NCBI RefSeq assembly: GCF_001194135.2
Contig: NC_068985.1
Coordinates: 103,587,455 to 103,629,142 of the forward strand
Source of the DNA: Octopus bimaculoides
Taxonomy: Eukaryota
DNA: 41,688 nucleotides
Direction: 5' to 3'
Positions 3,442-39,192 of the stretch are shown one piece after another; within the stretch, counting starts at the first letter, position 1, and every line of letters begins with the position of its first letter. The notes beneath the pieces are model-generated. The model searched no databases. It was not told the origin of the DNA and was given only the letters and a program-made list of their open reading frames with translations. A program made the translations under genes and the position numbers.

Positions 3442-3594
3442 TCTCAAAATCTGGATCATTGGTCGTACTTAACAGCGCCTGCTGAATACAGAACTCCCGT
3501 CCGGGTTTAGTCATGAAACACACGAAATTAGCGATGAAGATAAGCAACAGGATAATAGCCAGAATAATTATAACTATATTCTCCACTTTAAAGC
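3442..3594 (-). CDS. Gene A transmembrane exon
   Basis: 153 nt, phase 1-1, acceptor cccttgttttttag, donor A|[41 protein letters not shown]... is an uncharged hydrophobic run of about 22 aa followed by basic residues. Confidence 0.78.
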
Positions 3595-6500
3595 CTAAAA
3601 AACAAGGGTATTATATGTTAAATTCGAAGGAAATGCTAATTCATTTTTTTATTAATTTTTCTTCTACATCATTTAATTATTATTGCACAATAATCAGCAT
3701 TATGCCGATAAATGAAGGATAATTCTCAGCTCATTTCATATATTATTATTAGAATCTTCATTATCATTACTGGCATCATTATACTCGACTATAAGCCCAA
3801 CAGTATTACCAATACTTCTGTCATTGTCAACAGCTTCTTTTCTCGACTCTGCTCACCATCTTCTCGAAAAACCTGATATAGCATACCTCTGACAAAGAGA
3901 TGTAATCCATTTCTACTGACCAAAATAGACAGAGCTAGGGAATCTTTTTGGTAAGTGTAGGATTGGTGTTTACGTGAGAACCCTCCTCCCCTGCATTCAT
4001 CTTTCTAAAATTGGCTTGAAATTTTGACGCAGGAGCAACAATTTCGAGGGAGGGGTAAGTCGATTACATCGACCCCAGTATTCAACTGGAAGAATGAAAT
4101 GCAAAGTCGATCACGGTGGTGTTTAAACTCAGAACGTAAAGATAGATGAAGTAAATACTAACGGAATGCTAACGATTCTACCTACGCGCGCCTCCACACA
4201 CACACACACACACACACACACACACGCACACACACACGCACACACACACAGATAGATAGATAGATAGATAGATAGATAGATAGATAGATAGATAGATAGA
4301 TAGATAGATAGATAGATAGATAGATAGATGTCATATTTAGTGACAGTTATAGTTTTCTTTTTTGGTAAAACATTGCAAATTGGTGTCTATTTTAATTCTT
4401 TGTATACAAATTACCGATGCGCCAAATCATCCATATATTTCTATGATGAAAACATATATACAGACATAGAATTAAGTCCGAAATCTCCTGAAGTAGAATC
4501 AGTCCATACTGATGAGGCAACGGAAATTGTCGAAACTGAATACAGTGTAAGGAGTTCTCAAACGGTGTTTTCGGACGACTATAATCCCAGTCTGTATATA
4601 TATATATACAATTATAATGTGCTTTGACTACAGCATTAGAGCATTTTAGCTCTAACTTCTGGCAATGTAGGTGTTTCTAGCACCCTAGTCACATTTAGTG
4701 ACAGTTATAGCTTTCCTTTTTGGTAAAACATTGCAAACTACTATCTATTTTACTTCTATATATATATATACACTGACAAAAATAGGTTTAAGACCGATGA
4801 GGAGAGTTCTATTCTTTCATTAATATATTTTTAACAAAACTATAAAATTATTTTACTTTTTTGTGTTTATGTAGAATGTTTTTCCTCTTTCGAATGATAT
4901 AGGCGTTATATATCTTTTCTACAATTCGAATAATTTTAACGCGCAATTAGTTCAAATGATTAGAAATTATCAGCAAAATACGTTTAAGACCGTACCAAGA
5001 TTAAAAAAGTAAAATAATTTTATGTAGTTTTGTTTAAAATAAATTAATGAAGGAATAGAACTGTCATCATCAGTCTTAAACTTATTTTGGCCAGTGTATA
5101 TATATATATGTGTGTGTGTGTGTGTGTGTGTGTGTGTGTGTGTATGTATATATGACCCAACAGATACAGTGAAATTGAAACTCACTTAATTCAGTAAGTT
5201 TAAATACCAAATAGATGTAAACCACCAAACTGGAATTTATATTCTTCGTCTAGATTTCTCATTCCATAGTAAATTAAAAATAATAATGGAAAATGAGTTA
5301 TGAAATACAGATATTGATAAAACAAATTCAATGGAATCAAAATAATTTCTCTCATTCTTTAAAAGATCGAAAACAAGTGTGATCATTTGGGAGATAATTA
5401 TATACACAAGAAATAAAATAACCAGTTATCTTTAAAATATTGATAAAATAATTACAAAGGCAAGGGTAAAGTAAGCAACGTTTCTTTTGATTATACGACA
5501 TAATCAGAGGAATAAGGATAGAGTCCATGACCTTCTGTTTAGAATTTCCGAGGCAGTTGGAAGGATACTATTCTTAGGTCGATGACGTGTTACTTATTAC
5601 AGTGAACGCCGTCTAGGCTTTCGTGGACCAGATGGAGTTGACAAACTGGGCGATAGAATAAGCTTATTACCACAAAAGTGAAACAGATTTACTGACGGGC
5701 TTATAAAGTGTCCATCCAGCAAATTTCAATAAGGCTTTAGTTACCTAAGTCTATAGTACAAGACACTTGTCTAATGTAACATGTAGTAGAACAGAACGCG
5801 AAACCACATAGACGCGAAGCAAACGCCTTAAACACACATCCAGCCAGATTTTCGTCCAATATAATTCAGGAGCAACAAAGTATAAACGGTAAGCAGGAAA
5901 CAAATTTACTGACGAAAGATATTATAAGTTATAGAAGCTGAAAAATTTTTTAGGGAAACAGTGCAGCTTAAATTTAATCAGACTTACCTTCTTTGTGTAT
6001 TAATTTATATACTCTTCTTTTCTTACTGTAACTTTCACACTGGACATCCAGTTCCGTTGTATTAGAGGGAAGAAACAATTTCAGAATTGAACCACCAGGA
6101 GCACATGTTATATCCATTGTTTCGTATTGTGAGTGAACGGGTTGGAATCCTCCAGAGCAGTTACCTATAATGGAATCATTTCCTTTCCACATTGACAGTG
6201 CGTCTCCCTCTTCTAAAGGGCATAAAAGTGTTGCGACGCGATCACCTGTAACTGTTATAGTGCCAGCATCATAAACAGTCAAATTTCTACTGTCTATAAA
6301 TAGAAAGGTAATATCAAAGAAGGACAAGCGACGGAAAGTAGCAGCTTAGGAATATATGAATACATAATTATCTGTTACATAGTTTAAAATGCTAATGGAA
6401 TTAACAAGAGTGGTGTCACTCGAATAGATACCGACTTTACTTATCGGCTAGATAGTCATAATGGGAGATATATCACGATTCCTATATATAAGACCACCTA

Positions 6501-38800: not shown

Positions 38801-39192
38801 TGTTGTCCTCGCCAGGTGCCTTGTTTCTCTTGAGCCGTTTGATAAGAGAGTATAAATTTTACATTATTTCGTCAATTTATTTATTCATAGACTCCAAGTA
38901 TACATCCATTTAAATCCATTCAAATTATTGCTCTGCTGCATATTTTATCGTCCTTTAAATTTTTTTTTCTTAATAAACTAATTACAATATTTTGTTCTAG
39001 CATTGGTTAATTTGCTTATTTGTCAAATTTCTTCCAGATGAATCCAACGCCAATATTATAATTATAGCGGTTTCATCAGTAGGACTGTGTCTCTTGGTTT
39101 TCTTTATAGCTATAATTGCCATCTTGAAATTTACTGATGGCTTATGTTTCAAGAAATTGCAGATATGCGATGACTACTTAAACAAAGATTAA
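29767..39192 (+). CDS. Gene B: spliced type I membrane protein with three Ig-like domains and a short tail, about 394 aa
   Basis: Exons 29767-29821, 31707-31760, 33323-33622, 34586-34903, 35038-35340 and 39038-39192 total 1185 nt. All junctions are GT/AG phase 1, giving one open frame from ATG to TAA. Paralog of gene A. Confidence 0.83.
30365..30900 (+). mobile_element. ~540-bp interspersed repeat, non-coding (family E)
   Basis: Near-identical segments recur in reverse at 13248-13415 and 37610-37905. Confidence 0.8.
30900..31495 (-). mobile_element. 3' fragment of an R4/Dong-clade LINE
   Basis: Minus reading CLLIDTAVTSNQ...KEMEKLSK / VFKMWRMKVRTIPAITG...IALLKTAHILRK, then a 3' UTR-like stretch. 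Confidence 0.7.
31707..31760 (+). CDS. Gene B mini-exon 1 (end of signal peptide and N-terminal spacer)
   Basis: 54 nt, phase 1-1, acceptor ttttcattttacacag, donor CAG|GTCAGT. Reads (W)IFTEPYQQTHQKLALPT and restores the frame between leader and D1. Confidence 0.65.
31843..32036. repeat. (CAT/CAC)n microsatellite between the two mini-exons
   Basis: Seen directly; attached to a SINE 3' tail at 31800-31843. Confidence 0.95.
32190..32231 (+). CDS. Gene B mini-exon 2, diverged tandem duplicate of mini-exon 1 (possible alternative exon)
   Basis: 42 nt, phase 1-1 if the TAG acceptor at 32188-32189 is used, donor TAG|GTCAGT. Reads EPYEDSLQNFMTL; shares ttttacaca, ctgagccttat and aggtcagtt with mini-exon 1. 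Confidence 0.45.
32255..32482 (-). mobile_element. SINE family A, near full-length
   Basis: Minus head ggcggcgggctgacagaaacgttagc with B-box gagttcaaattcc, then gtcgactttgcctttcatcctttcgggg core. Confidence 0.8.
33004..33217 (+). mobile_element. SINE family A
   Basis: gcggcgagctagcaaaatcgtt...gagttcaaattccgccggggtcgacttt...ggccttgtgccaaaatttgaa. Confidence 0.78.
33323..33622 (+). CDS. Gene B Ig-like domain 1 exon (atypical Ig)
   Basis: 300 nt, phase 1-1, poly-T acceptor, donor A|GTGAGT. KLICPFRPGDFLQEW...VATCS...NVTC...LVFFC. Confidence 0.87.
33889..34203 (+). mobile_element. tRNA-derived SINE (family B) in the D1-D2 intron of gene B
   Basis: Same head as the 23756 copy; A-rich tail; aatgtttgcgt duplicated at 33876-33886 and 34204-34214. 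Confidence 0.88.
34586..34903 (+). CDS. Gene B Ig-like domain 2 exon (V-set-like)
   Basis: 318 nt, phase 1-1, acceptor ttttctgttgcag, donor A|GTAAGT. RLIC...LIWY...IYC...ITC...SDGRFSIVC aligns collinearly with gene A D2. Confidence 0.9.
35038..35340 (+). CDS. Gene B Ig-like domain 3 exon (atypical Ig)
   Basis: 303 nt, phase 1-1, acceptor catattttttttcag, donor G|GTATGT. IVVCPFEKGDELKYW...LVSC...VKC...LTLYC. Confidence 0.87.
35570..37140 (+). mobile_element. 5'-truncated R4/Dong-clade LINE in the D3-TM intron of gene B
   Basis: Starts at DDLKLYA (RT); MHHSKSDAHRLYLPRKEDGRGL; CRLC zinc knuckle; LLIDMTV...KYKD endonuclease; ends in a long (AAT)n tail. Confidence 0.88.
37140..37312. repeat. (AAT/GAT)n microsatellite
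   Basis: Seen directly; source of poly-I, poly-M and poly-Y ORFs. Confidence 0.95.
37312..37530 (-). mobile_element. SINE family A, tail-to-tail with the R4 LINE across the shared (AAT)n array
   Basis: Same core in reverse; its 3' tail (ggccttgtgcc..tagtggaaagg) runs into the ATT repeat. Confidence 0.75.
37610..37905 (-). mobile_element. Family E repeat, 3' half, abutting the RTE fragment
   Basis: Reverse complement matches ~30560-30900; followed by a (TAT/TTG)n tail. Confidence 0.75.
37905..38850 (-). mobile_element. Decayed RTE-like LINE fragment (RT region)
   Basis: KRNKAPGEDNI, FAFVDYEKVFDS and KIKLKRGARKGDNITP are non-LTR RT motifs of RTE type; frameshifted. Confidence 0.8.
39038..39192 (+). 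CDS. Gene B transmembrane and short cytoplasmic tail exon (terminal)
   Basis: Acceptor tttgtcaaatttcttccag, phase 1. (D)ESNANIIIIAVSSVGLCLLVFFIAIIAILKFTDGLCFKKLQICDDYLNKD*. AATAAA hexamers follow at 39200 and 39458. Not in the ORF track. Confidence 0.8.

Follow-up and report, generated by a model that had tools for sequence, protein, structure and literature searches.

A head-to-head pair of octopus genes for three-immunoglobulin-domain membrane proteins of a family found so far in coleoid cephalopods

Two divergent six-exon genes

We analyzed a 41,688-nt stretch of Octopus bimaculoides chromosome CM046605.1 at ~103.6 Mb (the whole of which is called the window below), an AT-rich, microsatellite-filled region with five runs of N. 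The window holds two genes on opposite strands, gene A (LOC106876421, minus strand) and gene B (LOC106876419, plus strand), each of which encodes a signal peptide, three immunoglobulin (Ig)-fold domains (D1, D2, and D3, one per phase-1 exon), one transmembrane (TM) helix, and a short cytoplasmic tail. Exons were checked by listing stop-free stretches in six frames and reading the sequence around every candidate. A polypyrimidine tract and AG preceded each of the eight exons named in a first-pass annotation of this DNA, a GTAAG, GTATG, or GTGAG donor followed, and intron phase was 1 throughout both genes. The exon sizes given in that annotation for A and B (D1, 303 and 300 nt; D2, 324 and 318 nt; D3, 306 and 303 nt; TM, 153 and 155 nt) were reproduced exactly with canonical splice sites, and its two phase-1 exon chains in opposite orientation yielded spliced proteins that correspond to RefSeq models: the 396-residue A protein is an exact match to XP_014780450.1, and the 394-residue B protein is 100% identical to XP_014780449.1. 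The original observation is real and its description accurate. Both genes are already in databases, where UniProt names the proteins "Ig-like domain-containing protein" and RefSeq calls them uncharacterized; the family itself is unnamed and unstudied, and a literature search on the two genes, their orthologues, and the family found no paper in the library searched that mentions any of them.

The first exon of gene A (21285-21342, minus strand) carries the start codon and signal peptide, ends at a GTAAGT donor in phase 1, and lies 10.7 kb upstream of the exon for D1. On the same strand follow exon 2 for the Ig-like D1 (10293-10595; 303 nt), exon 3 for the V/I-like D2 with its Cys...Trp...D-G-x-F-x-I-V-C pattern (8609-8932; 324 nt), exon 4 for the Ig-like D3, an internal repeat of D1 (5988-6293; 306 nt), exon 5 for the TM helix and juxtamembrane tail (3442-3594; 153 nt), and exon 6, beyond the range annotated earlier, for the acidic, Ser/Thr-rich C-terminus SVTEDSDKSDTSKNM and the stop codon (2858-2904). 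Gene B starts on the plus strand with exon 1 for the start codon and signal peptide MLRNNWKFLLGTFLYQLL (29767-29821), followed by a 54-nt phase-1 mini-exon, IFTEPYQQTHQKLALPT, that has no counterpart in gene A (exon 2, 31707-31760). Exon 3 encodes the Ig-like D1 with four Cys residues (33323-33622; 300 nt), exon 4 the V-like D2 (34586-34903; 318 nt), exon 5 the Ig-like D3 (35038-35340; 303 nt), and exon 6 the TM helix, a short tail ending CDDYLNKD with one conserved YxN, and the stop codon (39038-39192; 155 nt).

The two terminal exons of gene A were located by using the orthologue from Octopus sinensis as a guide (tblastn for exon 1). A scan for leaders by hydrophobicity had found the gene B leader and missed that of gene A, as it was swamped by open reading frames (ORFs) in microsatellites. 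Many long spurious ORFs of this kind, encoding His, Thr, Tyr, Ile, or Cys-Val repeats, arise in all frames from dense CA/TG, TA, ATC/ATT, and other trinucleotide runs. The layout of complete exon chains proposed at first pass held for the domain exons, to which the distant A leader, A exon 6, and the B leader and mini-exon were added.

The five N-runs lie outside the exons, at 6682-6892 and 9125-9837 in gene A introns, at 12624-13246 and 16699-16708 in gene A intron 1, and at 27312-27321 between the genes. By blastn, the window is collinear with the O. sinensis loci on either side of all five gaps, in the same order and orientation, and one alignment spans the gap at 16699-16708 uninterrupted. 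Both orthologues in O. sinensis share the six-exon structure, and on this comparison no coding exon is interrupted or hidden by the gaps. At the gaps at 6682-6892, 9125-9837, and 27312-27321, O. sinensis is longer by 1.3-5.8 kb, which makes the O. bimaculoides intron and intergenic lengths there uncertain; the true lengths may be several kb above those written. The DNA between the divergent start codons (21343-29766) is 8.4 kb as written and includes the 10-N gap at 27312-27321, which coincides with ~5.8 kb of extra O. sinensis sequence, so that this spacing may be an underestimate. The corresponding O. sinensis interval is 20.8 kb (CM016863.1, 92.2935-92.3143 Mb). We considered a shared compact bidirectional promoter and rejected it because of the 8.4-kb and 20.8-kb distances between start codons.

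Protein architecture and predicted fold

The A and B proteins are 28% identical over 324 residues (E = 8e-40), with identities of 26% for D1, 29% for D2, and 26% for D3. An estimate by eye had put D2 at about one third and the other domains lower; D2 is indeed the most similar domain, at a value slightly under that estimate. D1 and D3 resemble each other (E = 3e-6), and this sequence similarity identifies them as duplicates that flank the V/I-like D2.

We modeled the structure with AlphaFold2. An alignment of three sequences gave an unusable model with a predicted local distance difference test score (pLDDT) of 43, which was not taken into the fold search, and a 14-sequence family alignment gave a model with a mean pLDDT of 81 that consists of three beta-sandwiches and a TM helix. 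Each modeled domain has 8-10 strands in blocks with pLDDT values of ~80-94 (~90 for B D1). A Foldseek search of the PDB with this model returned more than 1800 matches at E <= 1e-3, and the top 50 listed were Ig-domain proteins save 7sqc_O0, a ciliary central-pair protein. The best matches were to pIgR, contactin-2, IgLON5/NEGR1, PTP-delta, DIP/Dpr, Necl-4, and NCAM (E = 1e-13 to 1e-9; 10-17% identity), that is, to generic multi-Ig receptors and to no particular named family. The model and these matches support placing A and B in the immunoglobulin superfamily (IgSF).

Sequence features of the domains are in keeping with this placement. B D1-D3, A D2, and A D3 have a B-strand Cys, a C-strand Trp ~11-12 residues on, and an F-strand Cys ~60-67 residues after the first, and conservation of these three columns is complete or at least 90% in an alignment of 11 family members, in which the D2 F-strand motif is D-G-x-F-x-I-V-C. 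The fold, the matches, and this Cys-Trp-Cys pattern bear out the earlier assignment to the IgSF, with a leader, an Ig domain, a V-like Ig domain, a further Ig domain, and a TM segment, and the Foldseek and profile searches agree with its statement that no named family could be matched. D1 of gene A (10293-10595, minus strand) has Tyr at the B-strand Cys position in both O. bimaculoides and O. sinensis and therefore probably lacks the core Ig disulfide, although its extra Cys pair is present; an extra Cys also stands five residues past its F-strand Cys. A second conserved Cys pair occurs in each of the three domains of A, B, and a third short paralogue and probably forms an additional disulfide from C' to D/E. 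In longer relatives of these proteins, described below, this pair is absent from D1 and D3 and partly kept in D2.

The proteins contain seven (A) and four (B) N-x-S/T sequons. Neither TM segment contains Lys or Arg (that of B reads IIAVSSVGLCLLVFFIAII). The A tail is 41 residues long, acidic, rich in Ser and Thr, and devoid of Tyr; the B tail has 24 residues. A regular-expression scan for immunoreceptor tyrosine-based inhibitory, activation, and switch motifs (ITIM, ITAM, and ITSM; with [SIVL]xYxx[ILV] and TxYxx[VI] for ITIM and ITSM) found none in either of the tails scanned, those of B and of the O. sinensis A orthologue. By eye, neither C-terminus (...TSKNM in A, ...YLNKD in B) fits the S/T-x-hydrophobic pattern of a class I PDZ ligand. 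Pfam scans of these membrane-anchored proteins found no lectin or fibrinogen domain.

Evolutionary rate, family, and surroundings

To compare the two octopus species, we rebuilt the O. sinensis coding sequences and estimated the nonsynonymous (dN) and synonymous (dS) divergence from O. bimaculoides by the method of Nei and Gojobori (NG86). Based on this one close species pair and its small dS, omega (dN/dS) was 1.30 for gene A (dN 0.139, dS 0.107) and 1.20 for gene B (dN 0.113, dS 0.094), with values from 0.67 to 1.83 for single Ig exons. The orthologues are just 74-78% identical at a dS of ~0.1, as the first-pass proposal of fast divergence would have it. When sites were split by conservation among paralogues, omega was 0.86 for the core and 1.24 for the rest, neither significantly different from 1. 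Divergence in the intron flanks was 0.13. Nucleotide identity to O. sinensis is 88-90% in the exons and 85-91% in the non-coding DNA of the window, so the exons are no better conserved than neighboring DNA. Conservation-based gene finders would not flag them.

The scaffold of both proteins has nonetheless been kept at this divergence. All 30 of 30 Cys residues and 11 of 11 N-x-S/T sequons are retained between O. bimaculoides and O. sinensis, as are three of four Trp residues, among them all three C-strand Trp, and no residue types are better conserved across the four sequences than Cys and Trp. Exon lengths in O. sinensis A (58/303/324/306/153/47) are identical to those in O. bimaculoides; for B they are 55/54/300/318/300/167 compared to 55/54/300/318/303/155 in O. 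bimaculoides, with D3 differing by 3 nt and the last exon by a shifted stop. Gene A has no indel in 1191 coding nt, gene B has in-frame indels only, and the frame is intact in both, whereas 152 of the 2476 intron-flank columns are gaps. When substitutions were simulated at random at the observed density, the frame stayed open in 0.14% (A) and 0.27% (B) of simulations. The earlier remark that the Ig exons stay open despite their divergence is thus confirmed, with splice sites kept and no frame-breaking indel. The B D2 exon is also present, at the same length and with the same splice sites, on a genomic contig (Logan SRR11869391) of a more distant third octopus; here dN was 0.21, dS 0.25-0.32, and omega 0.66-0.83, with a divergence of 0.21 in the neighboring intron. 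Replacements in gene A were mildly enriched outside predicted strands (31% vs 20%, p = 0.03). It is defensible to conclude that the fold is constrained and that change at the other, surface residues proceeds at roughly the neutral rate; positive selection is possible.

We searched for relatives with a HMMER profile among 1.84 billion representative proteins and obtained 17 matches at E <= 1e-3. Matches with a named source came from O. bimaculoides, O. sinensis, Octopus vulgaris, and the cuttlefish Acanthosepion pharaonis, and the rest were Logan contigs. The sole source-named match outside coleoids was weak, shared a cluster with a bacterial InlB B-repeat protein, and appears to be spurious. 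By this search, the family appears so far to be confined to coleoid cephalopods (octopus and cuttlefish), in line with the lineage restriction suggested at first pass. No one-to-one orthology to a conserved single-copy bilaterian IgSF gene was found, and the idea of a lineage-specific receptor family therefore survives this comparison.

The family has short and long members. The short three-Ig forms are A, B, a third octopus paralogue (LOC118763565), and cuttlefish homologues of 357-419 residues. Long forms, for example O. sinensis LOC115212116, O. vulgaris CAI9722592.1, and O. bimaculoides LOC128247863, LOC128247864, and LOC106874545, share the D1-D2(-D3) module (E = 1e-15 to 1e-12 against the A/B profile) and add canonical Ig domains with strong Pfam Ig_3, I-set, Ig_2, and C2-set_2 matches. 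The D3 homologue itself passes the Pfam C2-set_2 cut-off of 21 bits in relatives P0016 (29.5 bits) and P0008 (22.9 bits). The tails of the long forms have 287-430 residues with 20-30 Tyr in YxN, YxxM, and Yxx[LIV] motifs and contain four to seven ITAM-like pairs and no strict ITAM; judged by these motifs, they could possibly act as multi-SH2 docking scaffolds. The tails of P0011 (O. vulgaris CAI9722592.1) and P0012 (O. sinensis LOC115212116) consist of repeats in which YxxM or YxxL is followed by YxN or YxxV ~8 residues on. Logan contigs of 1.3-1.8 kb carry cuttlefish-type homologues as full-length, unspliced ORFs and are most simply read as assembled transcripts. The cuttlefish homologue likewise has one domain per exon and has a tandem neighbor of the same family.

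In O. sinensis, the orthologue of B (CM016863.1, 92.277-92.294 Mb, minus strand), the orthologue of A (92.314-92.349 Mb, plus strand), and the third paralogue (92.407-92.439 Mb, plus strand), which lies 57 kb downstream of A and is followed by a gene for an AMP-binding enzyme, form a group of three short genes in ~160 kb. The head-to-head orientation of A and B is the same in both octopuses, and the divergent pair is therefore ancestral to both, having arisen by an inverted duplication before O. bimaculoides and O. sinensis split. No further paralogue was found in the window flanks, in the 10 kb downstream of B, or in the 10-kb O. sinensis flanks. The long relatives in O. bimaculoides map to 34.4-35.0 Mb of the same chromosome, ~69 Mb from the A/B pair. 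Clustering, as first proposed, is seen in the conserved pair, the third paralogue, and the cuttlefish tandem, but it is small, with three short genes and with its long relatives far away.

The remaining DNA of the window contains repeats. A SINE-like (short interspersed nuclear element-like) repeat of ~170 bp occurs in nine copies with 71-83% identity (reference copy at 32240-32500; others near 11750, 12327, 20220, 26519, 32997, 35413, 37361, and 40171), and many more copies are present in the orthologous O. sinensis loci; ARAGORN did not recognize it as a tRNA, and Rfam and tRNA scans of the window found no Rfam family or tRNA. Gene A intron 1 contains broken ORFs of reverse-transcriptase type (14618-16437, plus strand) with a weak Pfam zf-RVT match at 15863-16210, which look like the remnant of an old non-LTR (long terminal repeat) retrotransposon. 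Positions 15011-20403 are collinear with O. sinensis at 88%, and the insertion would therefore predate the species split. A second remnant in gene B intron 5 (35520-37029, plus strand) is related to the first at the protein level (tblastx) and has no collinear match within the orthologous O. sinensis intron, so it would either have been inserted in the O. bimaculoides lineage or have been lost from O. sinensis.

Candidate recognition role and its alternatives

We favor the reading that A and B are intact, functional genes for type I membrane glycoproteins of the IgSF that serve as recognition receptors or co-receptors, and we put the probability of this reading as a whole, including its inferred functional part, at roughly 0.6. 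Support is good for its structural side, namely type I IgSF membrane glycoproteins that are paralogues from an inverted duplication in a coleoid-only family; the functional side is favored on account of the evolutionary pattern and of the tyrosine motifs in the tails of the long relatives. A scaffold of Cys, most Trp, sequons, exon lengths, and splice sites that is fixed while other residues drift at an approximately neutral rate would fit a binding protein of the cell surface in which specificity is shifting or relaxed on the face toward the ligand. The partner of such a receptor would be fast-changing and might be a microbe or parasite, or else a surface molecule of a conspecific or a gamete. 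Given the short tails, any signaling would need a partner protein; the conserved YxN of B could be a Grb2-type SH2 site, A offers no Tyr, and the long relatives with their many tyrosine motifs would be the candidate signaling members.

Several results weigh against this reading. Neither A nor B passed the Pfam gathering cut-off of any Ig model: B D2 stayed below threshold for V-set (20 bits vs a cut-off of 26; E = 8e-4) and Ig_3 (16.4 vs 30), A itself had no such match, and for its D2 the orthologue from O. sinensis gave just an Ig_3 match that was likewise sub-threshold. A search of PDB sequences with the sequence profile gave nothing better than E = 0.08. The RefSeq models for both genes are predictions. 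Omega was not significantly greater than 1 (one-sided Fisher p = 0.18-0.28) and comes from an NG86 estimate on closely related species; we therefore do not claim positive selection, and the diversifying pressure invoked at first pass is not borne out. Exon identity no higher than that of the surroundings, together with omega near 1, would also be expected under relaxed constraint, and replacements in B showed no loop enrichment (p = 0.33). Finally, with no ITIM, ITAM, or ITSM and no TM Lys or Arg, the sequences of A and B lack the hallmarks of classic immune paired receptors, and the earlier proposal of an immune, allorecognition, or neural role goes too far.

Comparison with known systems places the family among multi-Ig receptors in general. 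With these, the modeled A and B proteins appear to share tandem Ig beta-sandwiches, the B-F disulfide, the C-strand Trp, one domain per phase-1 exon, and type I topology; they differ in having the V-like domain in the center rather than at the N-terminus, an extra Cys pair per domain, only 10-17% identity to solved structures, and no orthologue beyond coleoids. The long coleoid relatives have the homologous module and the Cys/Trp framework and lie on the same O. bimaculoides chromosome, but are set apart from A and B by their extra Ig domains, long tyrosine tails, reduced extra Cys pairs, and distant location. The Alr proteins of Hydractinia are likewise lineage-restricted, highly diverged, clustered invertebrate IgSF members with about three Ig-like domains, a TM helix, and a tail, in which the Ig nature is seen mainly via structure prediction and some members have tail tyrosine motifs. 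Alr comprises 41 genes in a single complex (ARC), with a V-set D1, I-set D2 and D3, and no canonical Ig motifs (Huene et al., 2022, PMC9546547). The octopus proteins, in contrast, keep Cys-Trp-Cys, place the V-like domain second, and come from a three-gene cluster, and no cnidarian protein was among the matches of the profile search in 1.84 billion proteins. Octopuses are not colonial and are not known to have allorecognition. As far as sequences can tell, the resemblance to Alr is one of kind, not of membership.

Vertebrate receptors of the SIRP, CD300, CD2/SLAM, and leukocyte receptor complex (LRC) types are also small type I IgSF proteins whose genes form paralogous clusters and whose ectodomains evolve fast, with long- and short-tailed forms, and SIRP has three Ig domains as well. 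Domain order is V-C1-C1 in SIRP and V-C2 in CD2/SLAM. A and B differ from both in this order. Set against SIRP, CD300, and KIR-like paired receptors, they have no ITAM, no ITIM or ITSM as in the tails of inhibitory members, and no TM Lys or Arg as used by activating members for pairing with DAP12 or FcR-gamma; profile searches of the 1.84 billion proteins and of PDB sequences found no sequence homology to vertebrate immune IgSF receptors. Molluscan FREP and VIgL defense proteins join IgSF domains to a fibrinogen-related or other lectin domain and are secreted, unlike the membrane-anchored A and B, which have no lectin or fibrinogen domain. A tentative and rather doubtful extension of the favored reading is a coleoid-specific immune-type receptor system in which the short members would act as fast-evolving recognition or decoy subunits and the long members would signal through YxN, YxxM, and ITAM-like pairs.

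The same evidence was weighed for three other explanations. If A, B, and the third paralogue paired to specify contacts, they could be neuronal or epithelial adhesion or wiring molecules like IgLON, DIP/Dpr, or nectin-like proteins. Their short tails, small ectodomains, and a set of paralogues able to pair would suit such a role, and the best three-Ig Foldseek matches include IgLON5/NEGR1, DIP/Dpr, Necl-4, and NCAM Ig1-3. These matches are generic for Ig domains at 10-17% identity, however, and wiring molecules of the IgSF are normally under strong purifying selection, at odds with omega values of 1.2-1.3 and with the divergence of the orthologues at so small a dS. IgLON proteins have three I-set domains and a GPI (glycosylphosphatidylinositol) anchor, whereas A and B have a TM helix with a 24-41-residue tail; nectins and nectin-like proteins are V-C2-C2 with the V domain at the N-terminus, unlike the central V-like domain here, end in a motif that binds PDZ domains or afadin, and showed no sequence homology to A and B in the profile search of PDB sequences. 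With no GPI signal or PDZ-type C-terminus in the octopus proteins and no homologue beyond coleoids in the profile search, we consider wiring or adhesion unlikely. Reproductive surface proteins, acting between sperm and egg or sperm and the female tract and diverging through sexual conflict or species-specific fertilization, would account for the lineage restriction and for omega near or above 1, values that are usual for gamete-recognition proteins when seen in small membrane proteins with a single pass. The long relatives, though, resemble signaling receptors more than gamete adhesins because of their tyrosine-motif tails, and no feature is specific to reproduction, which leaves this role improbable.

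Alternatively, A and B might be lineage-specific genes that drift because constraint on them is relaxed, with little present function, if any, their open frames being survivors of a recent loss of selection. An omega not different from 1, exons no better conserved than introns at the nucleotide level, and the lack of an above-threshold Pfam match would all be in keeping with drift. The chance that both species would then have kept the frame open is only ~0.001-0.003 per gene, and drift would leave unexplained the absence of frameshifting indels next to indel-rich introns, the conservation of all Cys residues and glycosylation sequons, the intact B D2 exon in the more distant octopus, and the persistence of a family with one domain per exon since the split of octopus and cuttlefish. 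We judge this explanation quite unlikely.

Cephalopods have complex bodies and long-lived tissues and, to our knowledge, no adaptive immunity, and very few recognition receptors are known from these animals. A coleoid-only family of membrane IgSF proteins, in which the ectodomain turns over at the neutral rate on a rigid scaffold of disulfides and glycans, would be a testable candidate for lineage-specific recognition, which could be immune, reproductive, or neural. If the immune-type system outlined above were true, it would be a coleoid system for pathogen or non-self recognition convergent with vertebrate LRC, SIRP, and NITR receptors or with Hydractinia Alr. The family also illustrates that standard domain models miss real Ig domains in this lineage, as Pfam matches were sub-threshold and structure prediction worked only with the family alignment. 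The present analysis is of value for its definition of the family and of the way it evolves rather than for the discovery of the genes.

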